Below are positions 7,838-58,300 of a DNA stretch of 64,000 nt, in pieces; position 1 is the stretch's first letter, and each line of letters starts with the position of its first letter. The position numbers and the translations under genes were made by a program. The stretch spans positions 22,258,001 to 22,322,000 of the forward strand of contig NC_079171.1 of NCBI RefSeq assembly GCF_947568905.1, read 5' to 3'. Below the pieces are notes generated by a model. It ran no database searches and was not told the origin of the DNA. It saw nothing but the letters and a program-made list of their open reading frames with translations. The stretch comes from Ostrea edulis. Taxonomy: Eukaryota.

Positions 7838-10800
7838 TCGTCCCTATGGAATAAAATTCGTTCCTATGTATATAAATCAAAAATCTTATGAAATATCTAA
7901 ATATAATTATTGATTTCTATTATCAATACGTTTCATTTTTATTCATTATTTTTATTTTTATGAAATCACGATTTTATACGAAGTTTTTGCAACAAGTACT
8001 AGGCCTACCCGGAACAACAGTGGGTAAAATATAGAAGCAACTTATTACATGTACGAATTTCCAGGTATTAATTAAAATAATAAAGTTGTAACAGGAAAAG
8101 TTATTTTGGTCTGAATTTGCCACATCTGCAAATATTTATCTATATGTATATAACTTGGTTATTGATATCATAAAAAACAACCACGACGTGCAAATGAGGC
8201 GTGTTTAGCACATAATGACATCATCATCTTTCCCAACATCTTCTAATACTTGTAATAAGATATTTTGAGACACACCTGCTATCAGATTTTGAAATAATTT
8301 ATTTTTAAGTTTTGCTACATTTTTAACCAGACACATCGATATCCAAAATTGAAACCTAAACTGGCATGTAAACGGCGAGATTAAACATTCATTTTGAAAA
8401 AAAAAAAATAGCATGTTTTGACGATGTTCTTTAAAATTAAAATCAAAATACATTTTCTTTAAAACAAAATATATGTTAATGAATTGATCGACACTAGTAA
8501 ATTGCACATAAATAACATAAATATTACATGTATTTTTCAATTCGTCACATTTGTGGATGGAATGTTTTGTAATCTCCGTCTCCCTAGCTTGACGTCACTT
8601 CCTTTAAATCCGCCTTCCTATGGATTGACGTCACATCCTTTGATTATACGTGGTGACATCGAATCGAATTCTTTCTTTGTTATGCCTCCATCCCCTTGAA
8701 AAAAAAATGAATTTCAAATTGCATTATGCATATTCATTCCGAATTCAATCTGTGATGTAATACTTCATATTCCTTCACGAAAATGACCGATTCGGAGTGG
8801 GGAAAAGAACATATTCTATAAGTATGTATTGCAATAGACAGGTCTTTCTTAACAAATTTTATTGTATGTTTGGGAAGGGGGTGGCCTTTAGATACATATT
8901 TTGTGCATTATAATTGCACAACAGAATGTCAAATTTCAACTGAAAGGAAAAACTGTACATTCACTGTATATTGTAGAAGAAAGCTATAATGCCATTGTTG
9001 AATTGTCATGATTTATTATTGTTCTTTGACGACTGCGTTGGTTCAGGGATTGGTTTTTTTATTGTTATATATAAACATGAGGTCCAGCTGTATTTTATTT
9101 TCCACATGTTTTCCATGAATGAAATGCATCCTACAGTTCACAATCAATGACTATTATTTAGTACACTTACCTGTGTGAAATATTCCATAGACTGCTTGGT
9201 CTATCCTCAGTTTAATTCATATATCCTACACATTTTTATCATATGTTCACACAGAGTTAAGTACATAGAGGCTACCATTGTATGACATCATCAACAGTGA
9301 AGTTGGCGTATTAATTCAAAGTTATACAAACTTACCTTATTGCTACTATGTGTTGTTGTTTCATTTAGAATTCACATAGGTGATGAGATTTAATCAATAT
9401 GATTTAGTCTTTTATTGTTGTTATCATTACTATTTTGTGCATGCCCAAGGATACATTTTCTTCCTTGTAGGTAGTGAAGTCACAAAATGTAGTGCAGTGA
9501 ATTCAGCATCTATTTGAGTCAATTAACCGGGCAAGTTATTCAATTAAATTCATTGAGTTAATTAAAATAACTTGTATATCATTCTTGTATCAAGATGACA
9601 GTGTTTATTGCATGATTTAAGATCAGTTTTTCCTGTCAGGAACTGTCAGGAAAATTGAGTAATTTGATTGGCTAATTCCTAGCTGCTGAAACTGTATAAG
9701 AAAGGAAGAAGCTCAATTCAGTTAGACAGCTGTCTCAAGCACATCAGTGTCAGGACAAAAACTGAGAGAAACTTAGGTACAAAAATGATTTTGTTGACAG
9801 GAGATCATAATCGTTATAAAGAAACTATTCAATACTTCCCTATTTAATACCGGTATTTGGATTACTACAATTACTTGACAACTGAAGAATCCTGACAAAT
9901 AAATTCCTGACAAGTAAAATCCTGACAAATAAATTCCCGACAGAATCCTGAAAATTGAAATTCTGACATCTTATTTTCTGACAATTTAATTCCTGACAAC
10001 CTAAAATTATTGAACATAATTATTATAGTAATAATTAATTCCTGACAGCAAGTAGATTCTCTTTGCCAGAGTTATTTCCCTTTTATTCCCCTTTACTGAA
10101 CAATGCTATTGAAACGAATTTGCTATTATCTCTGTGTGATAAATATTTTCCTATATATTCCTTTTATTTGAGTTAAAGTTGTGAAACCGGAAATGAATTG
10201 AAAGTTACCAATACATTGACCAATCAGATAGCTAAATTTTAGCCAATCATAATGCTCAGTCACTATTCAATCAGCTTGAAGCTGTAGGGTATAAATACTG
10301 TGAAACCAAGTCAGTCTACACACTTTAGGCAACTATCTAAATTATTTGGACAAATTCAAGCACAGAGCTGGTGGGTTTCTGCACTGGATCCGATGGGGTG
10401 CTCCCTCCGTACCTCCTTTGCCGCCTCCTAAACACAGTCTTCAAGAAGACCGTCTCCCTGGTTTTACTGAGGGAGATCCGAGGGTCGATCGACCACAGAC
10501 GAAGAATAGCAAGCTACCTTCAAGAAGCCCTTCCCCCCGACTATACTGTGGGGATCCATGGGCAATCGACTCTAGGAAGAGGAGATGGACCCATCAACCA
10601 CCTTCTGGAGGACCTAACCATCCCCGGATCTTCAGGAAGACCCGTCCCCGTTTCCAGGAGATCCGAGGGTCGATCACCATCGTCGCCTCGCCGCAACAAA
10701 CCAAGTGTAGCAGGGCCCCTACTGGGCAGTCTGCACTATAAATCTTCACTATCGTCGTGGTATTCTACACACATCTGGACCAAGAACATCGATTAAAAGA

Positions 10801-13258: not shown

Positions 13259-16209
13259 CTTTAATATTATCCAGATCGTTGAACAAATCAAAGCCCAAAT
13301 TCGAATCCACAAACAATTTAATCATCTCCTTACGAGTTATGAGATCGTCCCCGTCCTGATCATACATGCGGAAGTGACATTGATTGGCAATAATCATTAC
13401 GTCATAGTATCCGGGATTCTATCAGAAGGTGAGAGAAAAATACAATTCAATAATTCCATTATCTCAGTACTTAGTCATGATATGCATGGTATGAGTTATG
13501 AATTCGACATATAAACAATATATCTACAAAAGCATTTGCTAAATACTTGCCTCGTCATTATCAGTTGATCTTTTGAACATCCAGCTGACGGATACACCGA
13601 AGTCCGGATTGGAACCTTTATTTTTTGTGCCTCTGGCTGTAAATTTCCAGTTGCCTTTTCTGATACTAAAACTACCTCCCCCGTTTCCTCGAAAATCGGT
13701 CGCTGCCGAAGCTCCAACATCCCATTTTGAACCTTGATGTTCAAGTTTTATCTGAAGCTGTCGTCCAGTTTTGGTATGTATGGTATCAAAAGTAACACTT
13801 GTATCTTTACAGTGAACTATCGCCAGGAGCGTTGCTAAAACGCAGATGAAGTTTATTCCCTATGAAAATGATAAGAATGATATCAAACTATCATACAAAT
13901 ATACAGTTCAGACTGTTTCTTAATCTACATAAAGAGTCAAAGGTCTATCAATTTTCTGGATCCGCCACTGTGCTCGTATCATAACTCGACGTCATTAATT
14001 ACAAGGAATTCCGTCTACGTCATTAATTAAATTTAGTTTAGAAAATGTCAAGGGCAGAGTATCATTTGATCAATTTTTTCTTTACCAGCTCAACACACTT
14101 CAACACGACCTAGCAATGAAAAAAGACACGTGATTTTCACTTCTAATGTCGGACGTTTGGAGAAGGAAATCACTGTCTGTATCACACGTCTTAGGGTTGA
14201 GCGGCACCGGGATCAAGGATCGAATCTACGACCCCCTAGTTACGACCCCAGGCTGTCGCGATTGGTTCCACACGTACAATGTCATCCTCACATCTAAATT
14301 TACTAGCGTGTTGTAATCGGAAATTGTGTTTGCATAGTTGTTTTACGTTACTTCTACAAATTTTCGTTCATATTGAGACCAGGAGTAGACATTTAGACCC
14401 ATGCATAGGGCTCAAGGTTGTAGCAGTGAGTTCTTTATCGTGCCTACACTTGACGCAATGATAGTTCTTTATCGTGCCTACACTTGACGCAGAGTTCTTA
14501 ATCGTGCCTACACTTGACGCAGTGAGAGTTCTTTATTGTGCATACTATTGACGCAGTGAGAGTTCTTTATTGTGCCTACACTTGACGCAGCGAGAGTTCT
14601 TTATCGTGCCTACACTTGACGTGACACAAAACCTTGCAGAGACGACTACGTCTCATACTTGGGTTTGAACTCGGGCTACCCGAGTTGTAATCGAACGGGG
14701 GAGAGTTTCAAATCTAGTGACACTGTGACACATGAACTGTACCCAACATTAACCCTGCCTTCTACGATGGTTAGAGTGGTAGCAATATGGCGGTCGTGTA
14801 ATGATACTGCGCATGTGTCAATTTTCAAACGAGGAATGTGATTGGCTGGAGTATTATACATGGGAGTGAGAAAGAACATTGGAATATTTACCCTACTACA
14901 TGTAGGTACGTATTCGGGTAGGAACCATGCAATGTTTTATTAAGGTCTCACCCAAAGAGCTATAACTTTCACTAAGGATCAACCACTACCTACATATAGA
15001 TTCTGACGTGTCTTAGATTTAATACTGTATCTGAAGCAGGACTCGACTCCGTGATCGCTTAGTTATGTACAAAGTAAACAGTCTAACCATCATATTGGAT
15101 GACCTTTATTAGAAGAATTGAATTAACCTTGAAATTTTAGCCACTAGAATTATCTAAATAAATTGCACTTTAAAAAATGTGTGCAATGGTTATACCTAAC
15201 ACGAACATCAATTTGTTTACAACTTCATTAAAGGTCTTGCGTAAAAATATGACATTTTACAGGAATATATACATGTAATTGTATTTCTACTGAACGAAAG
15301 AGTTTTGCTTACAATTTATACTAAGACTCAACATTGTAGGGATTTGTAATGAAGGGATGTCTTTGAAATATAACCGTTTCTTCATATTTCAAATTTGGGA
15401 AAAACTGTATTTCTAAAACAAACAAAATTAAGACTGTCAGTTGGAAAAAATTATTTGCAGTTACCATGCATCAAAGTGTGTATTGTGAGTTTGAAATTGC
15501 ATAATTATGTAAATATCTAAAGGTAAATTGCACGTGCAAGGTTTGATATTTGACGCAGTAAGAATATATCAAATAAAGTCTGTTATCATTTCTCATTAAC
15601 TTGTGATTATTAATTACTGCAAACAATGGGACATTTTGAGTTGTTCTGCTGGTGTGTTGTACAGATCTTCCGGCACGTTTATTTTCCCACATCTAGCGGG
15701 CTGATAACGGAATTCTGAGCAGGATTGGAAAGCATTAAATAATATACAATGTATTTATTGTGTTCAGTCATGACGAATTGCGAAATCGGAGAGAAAACTT
15801 GGAGTCGGTGTATTGATCAGCCTCCAAAACAAACGTCTTCTCAGAGAATAGTTAGATAGTTAATATTAACATAATAATAATTGACATTACATGTAGCATA
15901 ATCCTGTAATGACCCTGTGTGAAAATTTGTTTGCTAATTTTAAATCACTTCGAAAATTGTTCACACATACTAAGCCGTATTACCTATGATTGACCCTAGT
16001 ATTGACCCTAGCATTGGCAGGACTTTGGTGTTCAAGTTTTATCGTTAAATTCTTATCCAAAAAATCTGCGACTCTTAATTTCTACATGTCGGAAGTTTGG
16101 CGAAGGAGCAAATTATCTACTTATTTTAACTTCTTAGAAATCACACAGCCAAGGAATGAGTAGGGTTGTAGTTCATATAACGAACGTCCTATCCACCGAG
16201 TCACCGAGA

Positions 16210-16262
<53 letters not shown>

Positions 16263-16398
16263 TTGCCAAGAAATAAGCCATAACTATTCATAAATTGGAG
16301 GACACGGATGAGCGTTTTCCATACGATTAAGGATAAAAAGGTTTAAATGTAACGCTATCAAAATCTACCATTCAGATTTCAGCTAAATGACTTACCAT
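13259..16398 (-). CDS. Paralogue B: secreted precursor = signal peptide + 78-aa cationic beta-strand peptide + KR site + EF-hand domain (last exon not found)
   Basis: Exons 16398-16396 (ATG|GTAAGT), 13859-13551 (309 bp, GC donor GAG|GCAAGT), 13418-13259 (160 bp, phase-1 donor). Protein MGINFICVLATLLAIVHC-KDTSVTFDTIHTKTGRQLQIKLEHQGSKWDVGASAATDFRGNGGGSFSIRKGNWKFTARGTKNKGSNPDFGVSVSWMF-KR-STDNDENPGYYDVMIIANQCHFRMYDQDGDDLITRKEMIKLFVDSNLGFDLFNDLDNIKG... Phases and exon layout match paralogue A; exon 1 is assigned from TATA spacing and a perfect donor. Confidence 0.8.
14440..14720 (-). mobile_element. Degenerate tRNA-derived SINE with internal tandem amplification of its core (agttctttatcgtgcctacacttgacgc units)
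   Basis: The core ctttatcgtgcc...gtgacac is shared with the SINE at 23010-23235 and repeated about 6 times; a B-box-like gagttcaaacc follows on the minus strand. Confidence 0.55.
16214..16260. repeat. (CT)n microsatellite
   Basis: Direct inspection. Confidence 0.95.
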
Positions 16399-16429
16399 TT
16401 CTGTTGTGAGTAGAATTGTAGTTGCGTAT

Positions 16430-16461
16430 CAATGAAATTCATAACAAGACTCCTTTATATA
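16430..16461 (-). promoter_or_regulatory. Core promoter of paralogue B (TATA + Inr-like)
   Basis: TATATAAAG starts at 16461 on the minus strand; TTCATT with its A at 16433; short exon ending ATG|GTAAGT. Confidence 0.6.
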
Positions 16462-16914
16462 TGTTGGTTATTTGTTACTTTCTAATTTTACCGGTTTCAG
16501 AAATCGTAATGTGAATCTTGATTTAAATATGTCATGTCACATGGTACGACCCGCGTCAAACGAATATTCAACAATTGATCTCTCGCTGTTTGCAATTATT
16601 ATCACATGATTATGTAGATGTAGAATTAAAACATACTGCACTTTGTTTGTTATTTTGGAAAAATTAAAGTACATCATGATTCTGCCTCCCTTTTTAACGA
16701 GATCAAGGATAGTGATTTGAGTTTTGTCTATCCATCTGTCTGTAACATCTAAAAAAAAAAAAAAAAAAAAAGACAGGTCAAAAGTCAAGCCTGACCATAT
16801 CATGTTTTTTCTGACTGGTACGATATCGTAAACACAATTTACAAGAATTCCTATGACTTTAAAATGACCTAGTTCAGAGGTTCATGTTAGCTCTAAAGTA
16901 ATTGTGGTAAGAAT

Positions 16915-17510
16915 TTGGTTTCTTGGTGATGTAATGGGAACCAAGTGTGTATACGATACCAAAAATGTAACATAAATCCTGATCCACATGGCATGCACGA
17001 AAAAACATAACAGGAAGACTGTGTGTATGCTAGGACTGAAATAAGTCTATATTCTCCTCACTGTCAATAGTACCTGGTGATAACCTGCTCATGACACCAA
17101 AAATGTTACGGGAACCCAGTGTGTATACGACACCAACAATGTAACGTAAATCCTGGTCACGGCACCAACAGTAACAGGACGGGAGAAAATACAGCAGACC
17201 AGACCGGGATTCGAAGTCGGGCGCCCGGAATCCTCTAGTCAGGCGCTCTAGATACCGACTGAGATATCTGGCCATCGGCGATTAAACCGCTACATTCCTC
17301 TCTCCTCAAATATCTTCACACTTGAGGACAATAACCTAGGATCTTTTATCACCTGAAAGTCAAGAGATGGTCAACGGCACAAAATGTAACAGGAAGGAAG
17401 AGAATGCAACGGACCAGATCGGGATTCAAACCCAGTGCCCCTGAATCTCTCATTAGGTGCTCTATAACCTAAATTATCTGTCAACGGCGATCGTATCCGT
17501 CTGACCGCTA
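16915..17510 (-). mobile_element. Cluster of tRNA-headed SINE copies
   Basis: Reverse-complement homologues of 44008-44108 at ~17170-17275 and ~17385-17500 (gaccagaccgggattcgaa; cgggattcaaaccc). Confidence 0.65.
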
Positions 17511-19474
17511 CAGTGATATCGTCAATACCAATGGAAATGCATTTAAACAGTTTTAAGATTGTGAAAAAATGATAGCTTGCATTTTTTTCTATATAAACGA
17601 TATATGGTGAAGTCCTTTCGTTCAGGGTTGGTGGGAGGTGTTGTGGGGGCTAGGATCTTTAAGTTCAATGACGCTGTAGCATTGAGTATGTTTATGATTT
17701 TTAATGACAGAATATCAACCCCTTTAGGTAATAAAAGGGAATTTATTACCATTGCAGATGTAGCCTTTATTTGTTTAACGTAGTCTCCATGACAGAATAT
17801 CTCATGTCTTTTTTAAAGTCATATGGTCAAGACCTTATGATCATTTGGGAAAGAAATTATTTCTTTTTTAGGAAAAGTATTACCTTTTTTATCATCAAAA
17901 TATTAATCATAACTTTAAATGGTTGACATAATATTTTCCACTTTTCGTTTGATCTGATAATCCGCGCCAGTCAACTCGACGCGATACGACTCTTTGGATC
18001 AAGTTACTGTAGTAATATTATAATTCTAAACACGCTCGATTTGATCAATCTTTAACTTTCTGTAAAAAAAAATCGTTTTCTAGAAGTCCTTTGAAAAAAA
18101 CTACATTCTTTTAATACATATATATGTTCTGTATTTTTATCGAAGTTTATGAAATGAATACTAAGTATGCAATTCTTATCCTTTGAAATGAGATTAAATG
18201 TAAAGAAAACCATACTGCAAAATTAACAAAATCAATTCGATTATGTCGTGAATTAATGCAGTATCACAAACCCCCGCTAGCGCCATCTAGCGGTAGAGAA
18301 TCGCAATACAGTGGGCTGGCAGTCATTACACTGTAACATATACTCATAAAAAATTAAAAGTGTTCTCTTAATTATTTTGAGATATTTTAAAATACTTAAA
18401 ACTTTTTAACTGAATTTCATTTGATTCGTTGCTTTCTTCAAATGAATTGATGCGCGTGAATGGAATTCAAACGCGATCATTGGAAGAAAACAACGGTTCA
18501 ATCATGAATATCTTTAATTCGCCGAAAGAGGGCTGTATACTTTATTTAGAGAGAGCTTTAATTTGACGAATGAATGAAAGGTATCTCCAACTGATTAAAA
18601 GCTCTCTAATTAGAACTGAAGATAAAGCGCTCCAATACGTGTAATATCAGAGGGTATCCCCAAAATAAATAGAAGAAAAAGGAGAAATACAAATTATAGA
18701 ACATTTGTTGATTTGGAGACATGATACATGTAGGTACTGATGTTAAATCATTGTTTATTCTGGAATGAGAACTGCCGACGTAGGACCTGTTAGGTGCTCC
18801 TATTGAATCGTTCCGAATAACAATTCACGTAGAAAGAACAACAATCAGCTGGCGATATCTTCAATGATTTGAGTTGTGGGGTATAAAGTTTTGAGTACAG
18901 CCATGCTAATTTAATGTGCCGTCCGAGAAAGGAACACAATTGCGGTATAGTTTTCGGTATTGAAAACTATTATAAAGATTTTCAGTTCCATGGCTGAAAA
19001 AGTCACTGTTCAAAAGCCATTAGCAAGATGACTGCATAGTTCTCGTTACAAGGAGGGGGAAAGTAGGACGAGGGTAGGGAGAGGAGAGAGCAGGATGGGG
19101 GGGGGGTGGAGAGAGAGCAGGACGGGGGGTAGGGGTAGGGAGGATATGGATTTGCAGTCTCGGAGTGTTCTTGTCTTCGTTGTTGAGTGTGTGGTCGGGT
19201 CATTGAATATACGAAAGCAGAACTACATATGTATTAAAAATAAATAGGAAGTTTATATGTACAGAAGTTTTTCGAAACTTTGTTCTTCAATACAATTTAT
19301 TTCATCTATCAGGACACATTTGAAATATACAAAATTCACATAATAATAACAACAAACATTGTATATAAAATAAAGTATTGCACTTTCGGATTGTTGTGGG
19401 ACTGTATGTGTAATTTCCCTGAAATCATTTTACGAACGGATTACAATTACATCACTTTCGGTAACGTAATGTGA

Positions 19475-21044
19475 CTAATAACTGGCGCATCCATTGATTA
19501 CGAGTGGCGCCATTTCGTCGAATTCCTCTTTTGTGATTCGACCATCTCCTGAAATAATAATTTTAAAAAAATTAAATTATGAAATGATAAATTTAAAAGA
19601 CAAAATTTACAAGAATTATCGATCAATACAAAGTGACAACTAATATTACTTTACAATTGTCCTATATACCAAGTCATCAGTCAATATACATGTACTAATT
19701 TGTCTGTCAATATACTAATTTATCAGTCAATATACTAATTTGTCAGTCAATATTCTAATTTGTCAGTCAATATACTAATTTTATCAGTCAATATACCAAT
19801 TTATTAGTCAATATACTTTATCAGTCAATATAGCAAACTATTACATGAAAGGCTCTCATTGCGCTGATCTTTGGATCTTGAAGAATGCATATAATATATG
19901 TATAAGTAAACTTAATGAATATTCATAACAGATTATTAGACCAAGCACATACCTTTGTTGATATCAAGATCATAAAATAGCTGAGATCCGAATTCTGGGT
20001 TTTCAAACAAGTTGGTCATTTCCTCCAGAGTTATGAAATCGTCCAAATTATCATCGTAGCTATTGAAGTGGCACTGATTGGCTTGGATTAAAATGCTAAA
20101 TTTTCGTGGAACCTGTGATTGAAAACGTGTGATTGAAAGAAACATATTCACAAGAAATCAGAAAGAATATGCGAACACATGATTAAAAACAAAGAATAAA
20201 TAGCGAAACTGCGCGAGCAATCGTCCCCACCCACCCCAAAAAATTAAAGCAAACACTAAAAGGTAACAATTAACTGGCACTTTCTATCATTTACTTAATG
20301 ATTTAGACCATGCAAAACAAATCAAGCATGCAGAGCCAGTAATATATTGTACATGTGCATTTTTTTCTTTTTTCTTGAGGGTGATAAAATGGTTGTTACT
20401 GCCATGAATGAGTTAATAGAATGGATTAAAGTCCCAAAATCAAACCGGACAAATCATATATTTGATGTGTCATTCTCACAGACACTGTCTTCTTAATCTG
20501 TATACTTACGTCATTCGTTGACCTTTTGAACCGGATTCCTACGCTCACTCCGGCTTTCCAACCACCACCAAAATTGGTAGAGCCCCATCCTTTAAAATTC
20601 CAATTTCCGGATTTGTGTCCGACTGTAAGCTTAAGTTCCGGTCCTTTATTTCCGGTTCCCAATCCCAGATTAGCTGACCAGGGCTGGCCATAGCCCAAAG
20701 ACAGCAATGTTGATAGGACGCAAAAAGAATAGAGCTGTATCTAGAAATTAAGAGAGCCCCTCGTTGTAAAATTGGCAATATATAATGTACATTTGAACAA
20801 CTCGCAGAAGAATTTTCATCGGTCAAAAACATATTGAGATTTTCTTACTCTAAAATTAACATTGACACTAGAATTAAAATCGAGGTGCTTAAGAATGTAA
20901 TAAGTCATTCGTTGTTAAACGTTGGAACTGAGTGGTACAAATGTTTTTCAAAAAGTTGATGAATTTCTAGCTTAGAAGGAATACTTCAACTTCATACTTC
21001 TTTAGTTTTAATTCTAAAAGCAGTTTGAGATTACTAACCTTCAT
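19475..21044 (-). CDS. Paralogue A: complete 156-aa secreted precursor = signal peptide + 53-aa Gly/Trp-rich cationic peptide + KR site + two-EF-hand acidic pro-domain
   Basis: Exons 21044-21039 (ATGAAG|GTTAGT), 20740-20510 (231), 20112-19953 (160), 19548-19475 (74, TAG); all GT-AG and phase-consistent, 471 nt. Protein MKIQLYSFCVLSTLLSLGYG-QPWSANLGLGTGNKGPELKLTVGHKSGNWNFKGWGSTNFGGGWKAGVSVGIRF-KR-STNDVPRKFSILIQANQCHFNSYDDNLDDFITLEEMTNLFENPEFGSQLFYDLDINKGDGRITKEEFDEMAPLVINGCASY. AATAAA on the minus strand at ~19296-19301. Confidence 0.9.
19700..19832. repeat. Short ~18-bp tandem repeat (gtcaatatactaattt...) in intron 3 of paralogue A
   Basis: Direct inspection. Confidence 0.8.
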
Positions 21045-21099
21045 GTTCGTCTTGTCAAGTTCCAAATCCTGTTATAATTAATGTTAAAGTTGAATAGTT

Positions 21100-21203
21100 T
21101 TAATGAACGAAAGCCCCGGTCGTATTTATATATATACTTGAAGAGGATTGTTCATTTTTCCAAACATATGAATAAGGGGTTTCCCTGATTTTTAATGACG
21201 TAA
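21100..21203 (-). promoter_or_regulatory. Promoter of paralogue A: TATA box, NF-kB/Rel site, CRE/CEBP-type site
   Basis: TATATATAAATA (minus) within 21123-21136; GGGGTTTCCC at 21176-21185 fits GGGRNNYYCC; TGACGTAA at 21196-21203. Confidence 0.7.
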
Positions 21204-21704: not shown

Positions 21705-22990
21705 TACGAAAGCCCATTGGGCTCATTTCCGTAGCTAAAAAATAATATTTTGCGTTACAACGCTTAACTTTCGCGAATTAACGCGAAACTTTCTTGTTAT
21801 ACAGCGTAACTTTCACGAATAAACGCGTAACTTTCGCATTATAACGCGTAACTTTTGCGAATTAACGCGATACTTTCGCGAATAAAAGCGTAGATTTTGC
21901 TTATAAACACTAATTTATGGATTGAATGCGCTCAATATCAAAAACAGTAGCATGAAATAATTTGTTCATTACAATGAAGAAAAATAACGATAAACTTGTC
22001 TAGCTGTACTTTGTAATTTTGTAAATGCATATCTTTTGATATAATTTGACTGATTCAAGAATGTAATCTTATTCACCTTTAATTCAAATTTTACATATTT
22101 TGTTTTATTAATTATCACATAGGAGAGGTCTTTCTAGACAATAGAAATATATTAAAACCAAACCAAAAGCAAATCAAATGACAAAATTATAAAACAGGTA
22201 GTTACAAAGGTTGCTGTGAGAATTCTATGGGTTTTTCCAAAAGATGACAGCAAAGGGACAGAACAGGGGCGGATCCAGGATTTGTGGTTAGGGTGGCGCA
22301 ACTTTATGAGACAGATGGTCTGCGGCCGTCAGTGGTGGGGACCTAGGGGGCGAAGTCACCCCCCCCCCCAAAATCTCCTGGATGTTACAGATTTTATAGG
22401 GCTTGAATTATATCTCCTATGTATTCATTTTTACTATTTCCTGTCATTTTCAATTAGGTGAAATTAATAAAATGACGCAAATTTTAAGGGTTTTTGGAAA
22501 TAATGTAAGTTCTCCCAATAAAAGTAATTCAATGAATCAAACGAATTTGTCATTTATTTCCCCAAGAGTGGAAGAAATTATTCCTTCTTTTATCGTTAAC
22601 ATTTTTATAAACAAGAGACCACGATTTTCTGCTACTCCATAACCTTGGAAAAGTGTGGATTCATCTTTTATTGGAATATCTTAGGTCACCAAGTGCTTTC
22701 TAGAGACATTCTGCGGGGTTTTCAAGATATTAAAAGAATGAAATGTAGATTAAACATAGCTTACTCAGTAACATAAAAAATTCAGAGATTTCGTTTATTG
22801 ATAGTTTAAGGCTTGATTTCAATGGACGAAATTTTATACCCTCATATTAAAAGCTTTTGCTAGCTAAGCAACACTGGTATTAATCAATTACAAATATGAA
22901 ATCTACTTTGCATTCAATAAAACTTTAATAGCATATATACCAAAAAAATTCTGAAACGCGCGTGAATAAAATGTAGGCGTGTTAGATTGT
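21705..22990. mobile_element. Second, inverted and truncated copy of the IS3EU-like element, with a CAGGGGCGGATCCAG-type insertion from ~22263
   Basis: Starts TACGAAAGCCCATTGGGCTCA; collinear reverse complement of ~3960-4838 (e.g. gcttgatttcaa, gctagctaagcaacactggtattaatcaattacaaatatgaa). Confidence 0.8.
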
Positions 22991-55368: not shown

Positions 55369-58300
55369 CTAGACATCACATTTGTAAGGTTTATCACCAG
55401 TATGTGTCCTCATGTGTTTCCGTAAGTTTTGTGTATGACTGAACGCCTTCCCACAGACATCACATTTGTAAGGTTTATCACCAGTATGTGTCCTCATGTG
55501 TGTCTGTAAGCTTCCTGTTACACTGAACGCCTTCCCACAGACATCACATTTGTAAGGTTTATCACCAGTATGTGTCCTCATGTGTTTCCGTAAGTTTTGT
55601 GTATGACTGAACGCCTTCCCACAGACATCACATTTGTAAGGTTTCTCACCAGTATGTGTCCTCATGTGTGTCTTTAAGTCTCCTGTCTGACTGAACGCCT
55701 TCCCACAGACATCACATTTGTAAGGTTTATCACCAGTATGTGTCCTTATGTGTTTCTGTAAGCTTTGTGTCTGATTGAACGCCTTCCCACAGACATCACA
55801 TTTGTAAGGTTTATCACCAGTATGTGTCCTCATGTGTGTCTGTAAGCTTCCTGTTACACTGAACGCCTTCCCACAGACATCACATTTGTAAGGTTTATCA
55901 CCAGTATGTGTCCTCATGTGTGTCTGTAAGTGTTGTGTCTGACTGAACGCCTTCCCACAGACATCACATTTGTAAGGTTTATCACCAGTATGTGTCCTCA
56001 TGTGTTTCTGTAAGTTTCCTGTGTCACTGAACGCCTTCCCACAGACATCACATTTGTAAGGTTTATCACCAGTATGTGTCCTCATGTGTGTCTGTAAGCT
56101 TCCTGTTACACTGAACGCCTTCCCACAGACATCACATTTGTAAGGTTTATCACCAGTATGTGTCCTCATGTGTGTCTGTAAGCTTCCTGTTACACTGAAC
56201 GCCTTCCCACAGACATCACATGTGTAAGGTTTATCACCAGTATGTGTCCTCATGTGTGTCTGTAAGTTTCCTGTTACACTGAACGCCTTCCCACAGACAT
56301 CACATGTGTAAGGTTTCTCACCAGTATGTGTCCTCATGTGTGTCTGTAAGTTTCCTGTGTCACTGAACGCCTTCCCACAGACATCACATTTGTAAGGTTT
56401 ATCACCAGTATGTGTCCTCATGTGTTTGTTTTTGTCCTCACTTCCTTTGGCAGAACGCCATCCTCCTATTTCGTTATTGGTGCGTTTGGTTAAGGGTTTC
56501 CTTCGTTTGGTAGGAGTATAAAATCCAAAGCCTTCTGTATTATTTTCTCCCTGTTCAAACAAAAGACAAATGATATTTAGTATGCACAATGCTTTAGTAG
56601 AGAGAGAGAACGAGAGATTTTTGATCTAATTGATATAAACGTAAGCTCTGTTGACTTTTTAAAGGACTATAACTTCAGTTATCTAATATTCGCTTTCTAT
56701 TACATCTTTATAGTTTCTGGATCTCATATCATATGCTTCCATTTTGGGGTAAAGTCGCCCGACTCGACAGATTTGATAACAATTTGATTGTTATTGTTTT
56801 CTAGTCTCTGATCAAATTCAAATTGAGGAACGTGGGTTATTTTTGTATAACTTGGTTTGGTATGGTACCCCCCCCCCCCCGACAACCAATCGAGGAAACT
56901 ATTTCTCCCTTTCCAAATTTACGTCATAACACGGTTTTAGCCCTTCTCCGTAATAGAAAGTCAATGTGTGCAGTAAGATACTTCGGTTTAATACACATAT
57001 TCTCGTTGTCAAGCAAGACGTATAAAGTCTACTTGTACTAAACCACTGCTGTAAAACATCTTTCTCTGTATGGTGATCGAATATAGAGTGAAACAAAGAT
57101 AAGTATTTAATGATTTACCAAGTAAACATTGCCCTGTTCATTTTGAAATACATTTCTCACTAGAGAAGGGGGTGGGGGTATTGCTTCATTATTTGATCCG
57201 CCTTTGAATAAGGCAAAAAAAAAAATTAAAAAAAAATCATACGTCACATATCAGATGACGTCAGTCACATGGATATGTGGATTGCGATTTGTCACTGCTT
57301 ATACATATTTTCTTATTAGAGTTTAGAGCGTTCGCCCCGCATGCGGAAGGCCGGGGTTCGAATCCCGGCCGAGACAGATCCAAGTCGTTAAAACAGGTAA
57401 TGACAGTTCCATTGCCAAATGCTCGGCATTAGGTGTGAATGTCATAGGTCCTTGGAGATGACCTTAAAACCGGATGCCCCATGTCACAGTAGGTGTGGCA
57501 CGCTAAAGAACCCTCACTGTTCAATGTCCGTAAGCGCCGAGCAAAGGTCTAGATTTGAAGCCCTTCACCGGTCTTGGTGATGTCTTCATATGAGTGAAAA
57601 ATTCTCGAGAGAGACGTTAAACAAGATACAATCAATCAATCAATATTCTCTTATTAGCAATAATGTTGCATGCAAAGGGCAAGTTGTCATGTATAGTAAA
57701 AATTTCATAGAGTTAAAAGTCGTAAATTATAAAATTGCATTTTCTGATATTTGATGACTTATTTTGAGTAGACCTAAATAATGTGATATTTCCCGTATTT
57801 TTCTTTTAGTCGGAGCTGAGCCAGCTTAGCGATTTCAAAGTCGATCTGTAAAGCGCAGCGAAATACGCATTGCATGCATAGCTTACACATATTTTGCCAT
57901 GACAAACTCAATCTAATTAAAATTAGATGTTGGATCCGCTCGTATACTCGCTACACAAGCGAGTATGCAAGCGGATCTAACATCTAATTTCAATTAGATT
58001 GTGACAAACTTCAAATCCAATAGGTCAAATTATATTAAATTTTACAATACAATAAATAGGTAAATAGGCCCCGTAGAACAAAAATTGCTGCTTTTGAAGA
58101 CACTTCGCCGTGGTTGCTAAGTGAATCACTGTGCGGCTCAATTGACGTGTATTTTTTTTTTTTAAATACAATTTATATACATTTTGAAAAACGAAAGTCA
58201 GTGCCTTTGTCTTTTGAATTAAATTGTTAGGAAATACTTTCATTCTGGAGTATCTTATACAAGTATAACATGGTTTGGGTCAGTTTACTGGGTTTTTATA

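Follow-up and report, generated by a model that had tools for sequence, protein, structure and literature searches.

Two tandem genes of the flat oyster Ostrea edulis as members of a candidate bivalve family of precursors joining a cationic beta-strand peptide to an EF-hand tail

To our knowledge, the described antimicrobial peptides of bivalves are almost all disulfide-rich; a passage of a 2025 article (PMC12294457) counts the myticalins among the very few known molluscan antimicrobial peptides without cysteines. In the mytimycin precursor, a polybasic site separates a Cys-rich peptide from an acidic extension that carries two EF-hand loops, and the authors of that report thought that this extension had been acquired as an exon (PMC8004829). 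Small secreted EF-hand proteins are also found among molluscan shell-formation factors, such as EFCBP, PFMG1, and SMP5, the last of which is described as all-helical, with three EF-hands and free of beta strands; acidic EF-hand proteins occur in the larval shells of Crassostrea gigas and Pinctada. Here we report on a stretch of 64,000 nucleotides from Ostrea edulis (assembly GCF_947568905.1, contig NC_079171.1, positions 22,258,001 to 22,322,000 of the forward strand), free of N and hereafter called the window. It holds two tandem genes on the minus strand, LOC125662238 (gene 1) and LOC125662418 (gene 2). Judged by their sequences, they encode precursors of bivalve cationic peptides that carry an anionic EF-hand extension and are built around an orphan peptide domain. 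We give a probability of about 0.5 to the reading that both belong to a bivalve family, not described before, of secreted precursors in two parts, in which the peptide is a putative host-defence (antimicrobial) effector.

In both precursors, an N-terminal hydrophobic leader (the predicted signal peptide) is followed by a cationic peptide, a Lys-Arg pair (KR), and an acidic EF-hand pair. Gene 1 is annotated by NCBI as "uncharacterized" in Ostrea edulis and encodes 156 aa on the minus strand. Its spliced coding sequence gave an exact match to the NCBI protein (P0001), and a word-based search with exon 2 returned the 156-aa NCBI protein at 100% identity to the gene 1 model. The elements of gene 1, in window coordinates, are as follows.

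21039..21044, minus strand: exon 1, coding part ATG AAG, then donor GTTAGT (spliced coding sequence equal to the NCBI protein)
20510..20740, minus strand: exon 2, with the remaining signal peptide, the peptide domain, KR, and STND (very deep RNA contigs)
20528..20686, minus strand: predicted mature peptide, 53 aa, QPWSANLG...VGIRF (from sequence composition)
20522..20527, minus strand: Lys-Arg, predicted proprotein-convertase site (FKRS conserved in nearly all members)
19953..20112, minus strand: exon 3, 160 bp, with a linker, Cys93, EF-hand 1, and the start of EF-hand 2 (joints on both sides)
20020-20055, minus strand: EF-hand 1 loop DDNLDDFITLEE, within exon 3
19523-19548 and 19953-19965, minus strand: the two parts of the EF-hand 2 loop
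19475..19548, minus strand: exon 4, with the remainder of EF-hand 2, Cys153, and the stop TAG (RNA joint 19548|19953)

Gene 1 is transcribed and spliced across introns 2 and 3. RNA contigs from three runs crossed these introns at 19548|19953 and 20112|20510, with GT..AG borders on the minus strand, and the former joint was seen in runs X1 and X4; the splicing proposed in an earlier note on this DNA was thereby borne out for gene 1. Contig depth over 19300-21200 was restricted to the four exons of gene 1, and two presumed RNA runs contained about one third of the sampled words of 19900-20800, which equals the exon share. The word depth of exon 2 was extremely high, up to ~200,000 in one run. 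Exon 1 had contig depth at 21028-21091 in run X2, and the intron 1 joint was not among the joints listed. Gene 2 was weakly represented in the same two presumed RNA runs, with 0.14 of its words. We must also note one marine metatranscriptome contig (run X4, 95-99% alike) that joined 20117 to 20373, with 11 foreign letters between, in place of the intron 2 junction; it may represent an allele of a related species or a mis-assembly.

The earlier note had described tandem paralogues, each with a tiny ATG exon, a peptide exon, and a 160-bp exon taken as the single EF-hand exon. The paralogues and the three exons stood; a fourth exon, present in the NCBI models and in the RNA, had been missed, and the EF-hand pair spans exons 3 and 4. 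The donor of exon 3 falls in the middle of an EF-hand loop, and exon 4 supplies the rest of the loop, the C-terminal helix, a Cys, and the stop. Read-through of exon 3 into the intron was considered as well, and was ruled out by the position of the donor inside the EF-hand loop in both genes, by the NCBI models, and by the RNA joints.

The predicted mature peptide of gene 1 has a net charge of +5, an isoelectric point (pI) of 10.6, 13 Gly, 4 Trp, an N-terminal Gln, and no Cys, and that of gene 2 has 78 aa, a net charge of +6, and no Cys. The figures given in the earlier note proved exact, and recomputation from the sequence returned the Phe directly before Lys-Arg that it had noticed in both peptides. 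Across the six full-length members of the family, the peptide contained 0 Cys and 10-13 Gly, with a net charge of +4 to +6, a pI of 10.0-10.6, and a C-terminal Phe, and the remainder of the precursor had a net charge of -4 to -11 and a pI of 4.1-4.9. This charge complementarity between a cationic peptide and an anionic tail was found in 6/6. The peptides are Gly/Trp-rich, and their length varies from 38 to 78 aa.

Beta-type hydrophobic periodicity (~170 degrees) exceeded that of shuffled sequences (z 2 to 3.5, with 3.5 for the gene 1 peptide), and the Kyte-Doolittle beta-amphipathicity of either window peptide was reached by no more than 3/1000 shuffles; helical periodicity was below expectation. 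Both AlphaFold2 runs predicted four strands for gene 1, at low confidence. The predicted number of strands varies among members from ~3 to 6, with about three in the 38-aa peptides of Crassostrea virginica and about six in the 78-aa peptide of gene 2. The latter showed no significant internal hairpin duplication, the score being reached by 86/500 shuffles. Foldseek searches with these poor models gave no match under E 0.09 to PDB entries or Swiss-Prot models, a result that is meaningless at such model quality.

The motif (F/W)-K-R-S was invariant or nearly so across 17 sequences and stands at the end of the peptide exon, the module boundary being the exon boundary. Phe or Trp precedes the basic site in 15/16 members; the site itself is KR in most members, and two members have RKR or KKR instead. 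Most members also retain the predicted N-terminal Gln. From the conserved site we infer that a convertase cleaves at KR.

The tail, encoded by exons 3 and 4, appears to be a disulfide-capable EF-hand pair, with two Cys that are invariant in the six full-length members, the first ahead of EF-hand 1 and the second close to the C-terminus. Exon 3 of gene 1 matched Pfam EF-hand_6 (E 6e-5) and EF-hand_7 (E 6e-4), under the gathering score, and in a structure search of the ESM Atlas EF-hand pairs were matched at TM (template modelling) scores of 0.58-0.70. All full-length members have a canonical EF-hand 1 loop, in which positions 1, 3, and 5 are D/N/D and position 12 is Glu. As to EF-hand 2, Saccostrea cucullata has the canonical form, both Ostrea genes have an insertion of one residue, and C. 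virginica has a degenerate form; in Ostrea, its calcium binding may be lost or altered. The Ostrea loop reads K-G-D-G where the canonical 12-residue loop of S. cucullata reads K-D-G, and the extra residue falls exactly on the junction of intron 3. When residues 80-156 of gene 1, the EF-hand part, were used in a word-based search, the query alone was recovered; a search of this kind with exon 2 of gene 2 returned no candidate, an outcome explained by its length window and word filter.

The mytimycin-like layout of the EF-hand pro-domain, pointed out in the earlier note, agrees with the text and the supplementary alignment of the mytimycin report (PMC8004829). In both systems, a signal peptide and a cationic peptide come first; the di- or polybasic site after them has Ser or Asp as its next residue and leads into an acidic extension that contains two EF-hands. 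The EF-hand part lies on its own exon or exons in both, and both occur in pteriomorph bivalves. Nevertheless, the mytimycin peptide is Cys-rich (~12 Cys), whereas that of the oyster family has 0 Cys and is predicted to form a beta-amphipathic Gly/Trp domain. The mytimycin extensions typically have no counterpart of the invariant Cys pair of the oyster family, a few carrying a single Cys; they also have a longer linker between the loops and terminate directly after EF-hand 2. Compared by eye, the two kinds of tail showed generic EF-hand likeness alone.

We propose that removal of the leader would expose an N-terminal Gln in most members, able to cyclise to pyroglutamate, and that a convertase of the furin/PC (proprotein convertase) type would cut after KR in the secretory pathway, with a carboxypeptidase trimming K and R. 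The product would be a cationic beta-sheet peptide in free form, ending in ...V-x-V-G-I-R-F. Before release, the acidic, Ca2+-binding, disulfide-locked EF-hand module may neutralise or chaperone the peptide, a role also ascribed to the C-terminal anionic extensions of the mytilin, myticin, and mytimycin precursors of mussels. The released peptide would then act as a host-defence effector on microbial envelopes; its amphipathic strands of 9-11 residues with aromatic ends would be consistent with a membrane or outer-membrane target.

As far as sequence comparison reaches, the peptide part belongs to no described family, as the earlier note had supposed. Members are annotated as "uncharacterized", and literature searches, including those on oyster EF-hand and glycine-rich antimicrobial-peptide topics, found no description of the family, of the locus names, or of the peptide motifs. 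A profile of the peptide domain run against 1.84 billion representative proteins retrieved 14 proteins at E <=0.001, all of this family, from Ostrea, Saccostrea, C. virginica, and metagenome assemblies, where open reading frames (ORFs) had been called on eukaryotic DNA. Searches of PDB sequences with the family profile and with single peptides (P0001, P0015) returned nothing relevant.

The orthologues of gene 1 in Saccostrea echinata and S. cucullata have 161 aa, and C. virginica has two family genes of 148 aa, also "uncharacterized". A peptide exon followed by EF-hand exons was found in Saccostrea, in C. virginica, and on three further contigs, namely a 945-kb contig, a JGI contig that carries a gene-2-like orthologue with its following EF-hand exons, and a contig from a hydrothermal vent. 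In Saccostrea, in C. virginica, and on the 945-kb and vent contigs, the three modules are spread over three coding exons. The layout on the three contigs suggests that the three-module design is old and reaches beyond oysters. In the vent member, RKR replaces KR, the EF-hand 1 exon is of the 160-bp type and includes the Cys, and the last exon ends in GC; its complete layout of peptide, RKR, and EF-hand exons was located at L004 408-3731 and L005 437-631. It presumably represents host animal DNA in a metagenome sample, and a vent mussel as the source would be a guess. On the JGI contig (L006), two 119-aa ORFs at 219-578 and 956-1315, 740 nt apart, may reflect a local duplication of the peptide exon.

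By tblastn, exons 2, 3, and 4 of gene 1 and gene 2 match at E 1e-6, 8e-13, and 9e-7, respectively, which places their paralogy beyond chance; no third copy was found by tblastn in the window. Tandem copies occur in three genera (Ostrea, C. virginica, and S. cucullata); those of C. virginica and S. cucullata lie at L003 3534-4718 and 8001-10339 and at L007 3001-6337 and 6887-9337. Between Ostrea and Saccostrea orthologues, identity was 83-87% in the peptide, 55% in the EF-hand part, and 37% in the signal; between the window paralogues it was 32% in the peptide and 53% in the tail. The peptide, conserved in orthologues and divergent in paralogues, is thus likely to be the constrained and functionally diversified part of the precursor.

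The same conservation could be expected of an endogenous signalling-peptide precursor (hormone-, cytokine-, or pheromone-like) that is processed at KR and acts on an oyster receptor. The peptide is retained between the two genera while its flanks drift, and the predicted N-terminal Gln of most members and the dibasic site are features common in neuropeptide precursors. However, amphipathic Gly/Trp-rich beta peptides of 38-78 aa do not resemble the neuropeptides known from molluscs, KR is not preceded by an amidation Gly, and the predicted number of strands is not constant among members. Moreover, the tandem copies in three genera, the strong divergence of the window paralogues in the peptide, and the extreme transcript depth all argue against a signalling role, which we regard as improbable.

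A second alternative follows from the shell proteins. EFCBP, PFMG1, and SMP5 share with the oyster family a signal peptide, a length of ~130-220 aa, acidity, two to three EF-hands, and molluscan origin, and the window genes might encode a secreted structural protein that remains unprocessed and binds Ca2+ in mucus, in the shell matrix, or in some other extracellular matrix. In that case, self-assembly or attachment to a scaffold would fall to the Gly-rich beta domain and Ca2+ binding to the EF-hand pair, with KRS as a structural linker and not a cleavage site. Small secreted EF-hand proteins are known molluscan shell-formation factors, and the window genes encode a Gly-rich N-domain with an acidic tail; a very high transcript depth is typical of matrix genes, and two invariant Cys suit a stable extracellular domain. 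Nevertheless, EFCBP, PFMG1, and SMP5 have neither a cationic beta domain nor a conserved dibasic module boundary, SMP5 with its three EF-hands is described as lacking beta strands, and the profile search returned no shell-matrix protein with a shared N-domain. The invariance of F-K-R-S at the exon and module boundary, together with the cationic/anionic split, is a hallmark of processed precursors, and the most conserved part is the peptide domain rather than the Ca2+-binding part. We therefore consider a matrix protein unlikely and a processed precursor of a host-defence peptide the preferred reading.

The processed-precursor reading was first put forward together with a likeness of the peptide to insect attacins and diptericins. 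The two groups are indeed alike in kind, both being Cys-free, Gly-rich, cationic, and secreted, with an aromatic C-terminus and release from a precursor by a convertase-type cut, which is inferred for the oyster family. True homology to the glycine-rich domains of attacin, diptericin, or gloverin nevertheless appears very improbable. Attacin_C (PF03769), Attacin_N (PF03768), and Gloverin (PF10793) gave zero matches at E <=10 among 16 members, the window peptides included, nor was any other insect family matched, and the profile search returned the family itself and no arthropod protein. In a language-model feature search, gloverin, attacin, and diptericin clusters scored 0.77-0.79, but likeness below 0.9 is rated a lead only, and shuffled proteins reach 0.8 one third of the time. 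No attacin came up among Swiss-Prot models in a fold search, the query model of which was poor. The insect proteins have no EF-hand module, belong to another phylum, and differ in gene structure, and no sequence homology is detectable. The likeness drawn in the earlier note, if read as kinship, is thus not supported.

A different resemblance was seen in the bacterial outer membrane. The sole Pfam matches of the peptide domain were sub-threshold matches to YadA_anchor (PF03895) and OMP_b-brl. The former appeared in 9/16 peptide domains at E <=10, with a best E of 0.004 and a best score of 17.6 bits, under the gathering score of 22.7. In the inspected alignments of seven members, the last hairpin lay on profile positions 27-34 to 60 of 60, so that the final residue of the YadA profile falls on the Phe or Trp before KR. 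Hydrophobic residues stand 1, 3, 5, and 7 positions from the predicted new C-terminus; an alternating-hydrophobic last strand with a C-terminal aromatic is therefore present, provided that KR and everything after it are removed, as predicted. An ESM Atlas model superposed with its residues 21-77 on YadA anchors at TM 0.73-0.80, normalised by query.

Homology to YadA is disfavoured because reverse searches against PDB sequences (with the family profile and with the P0001 and P0015 peptide domains) returned no autotransporter, no bacterial or viral protein appeared among the peptide-profile matches, and the number of strands is variable. YadA anchors contribute four strands per protomer to a trimeric 12-stranded barrel, whereas the oyster peptides vary in predicted strand number; the anchors are bacterial, whereas the oyster genes are eukaryotic and intron-bearing, with the domain fused to EF-hands. 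We read the likeness as convergence on the sequence grammar of membrane beta-hairpins, which would be a clue to mechanism and not to ancestry.

It is conceivable, though we think it quite unlikely, that the trimmed peptides mimic the C-terminal beta-hairpins of bacterial outer-membrane proteins, of which the trimeric-autotransporter anchors are the nearest, or form barrel-like pores. The cut at KR with trimming would then yield a ...V-x-V-G-I-R-F end that imitates the bacterial beta-signal. The peptide might engage the beta-barrel assembly machinery or the envelope-stress sensors that read such ends, or it might enter microbial membranes and assemble there into barrel-like, oligomeric pores; before release, the signal would be hidden by the EF-hand tail. 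Darobactin is an antibiotic that mimics the beta-signal, and the oyster peptides, if this were true, would be a host-encoded counterpart of such antibiotics. A functional likeness to the outer-membrane beta-signal would add a new natural mode of attack on Gram-negative envelopes.

Immune regulation of gene 1 would suit a host-defence effector. Two elements were recognised in its promoter.

21176..21185, minus strand: kappaB-like site GGGAAACCCC (GGGRNWYYCC match), proximal gene 1 promoter, ~135 nt before the ATG
21125..21130, minus strand: gene 1 TATA box, TATAAA (shared by the aligned promoters of three species)

The kappaB-like site, ~50 nt upstream of the TATA box, is the sole GGGRNWYYCC match in the window, a count not above chance; the weight lies on its position. 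At the aligned position, the orthologous promoters of S. echinata and S. cucullata have GGGAATTCC, and two ACGTCA boxes and the TATA box that flank the site are conserved in position in the three species. The conserved site fits Rel/NF-kB control, and hence immune regulation, without amounting to proof. The promoters of the two paralogues showed no mutual similarity. Further upstream of gene 1, by ~700 nt, we observed a 21-bp minisatellite of ~8 units (21748-21908).

Several observations weigh against a host-defence precursor of this design. The C. virginica copy with a known start has no kappaB-like site within 1 kb, and Rel/NF-kB sites have been reported in the promoters of pearl-oyster shell-matrix genes, too. 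The peptide is strongly conserved across genera, unlike many fast-evolving bivalve antimicrobial peptides. Its fold is not established because the structure models are poor, with an AlphaFold2 pLDDT (predicted local distance difference test) of 35 from the single sequence and 44 from a 17-row alignment. In the tail, the Pfam EF-hand matches (E 5e-5 to 2.5e-3) reached 18-23 bits compared to gathering scores of 25-30, and EF-hand 2 is non-canonical in Ostrea and C. virginica. The evidence for transcription comes from public contigs of runs guessed to be RNA.

If the peptide is a host-defence effector, a conserved and very highly transcribed family of Cys-free beta-sheet peptides would represent a new class of effector in the flat oyster, the restoration of which is limited by disease. 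The arrangement of peptide, basic site, and EF-hand tail would be a recurrent bivalve packaging of cationic peptides and no mussel oddity, and with such a recurrent design, two independent systems would be available in which to test what the EF-hand module does. The peptide would be easy to synthesise and assay because it has no cysteines and, in several members, 38-53 aa.

Gene 2 is annotated as "uncharacterized", with a 182-aa protein (XP_048750586.1, P0006) on the minus strand. The spliced model with a bare ATG as the first exon gave an exact translation match to this protein; the exon contributes the ATG alone because the NCBI model begins M|GINF. Its elements are as follows.

16396..16398, minus strand: best candidate for an ATG-only first coding exon, ATG|GTAAGT (TATA box ~65 nt upstream)
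13551..13859, minus strand: exon 2, with the GC donor GCAAGT
13809-13859, minus strand: predicted signal, within exon 2
13575-13808, minus strand: predicted peptide, 78 aa, net +6, 0 Cys, C-terminal WMF, within exon 2
13569-13574, minus strand: KR, then STDNDE, within exon 2
13259..13418, minus strand: exon 3, 160 bp, encoding a Cys, EF-hand 1 (DQDGDDLITRKE), and the first part of EF-hand 2
8669-8694 and 13259-13271, minus strand: the two parts of the EF-hand 2 loop
8618..8694, minus strand: exon 4, with the remainder of EF-hand 2, the second Cys, and the stop TAG

With exon 4 at 8694-8618, gene 2 reaches ~4.6 kb below position 13259, at which the earlier note had ended the system, and runs down to 8618. 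The donor of intron 2 (13545-13550, minus strand) is GC, in GCAAGT, and not GT; the NCBI protein model has the same junction. A 34-bp tandem repeat at 14428-14655 lies upstream of exon 2, probably in the first intron, and a (GA)n/(CT)n microsatellite at 16190-16250, which reads as RERERE and SLSLSL ORFs, lies just downstream of the candidate first exon. No tRNA or Rfam element was found between 8 and 22 kb in the window. Elsewhere in the window, a 406-aa ORF at 55369-56589 on the minus strand encodes ~13 tandem C2H2 zinc fingers (Pfam zf-H2C2_2, E 9e-149).

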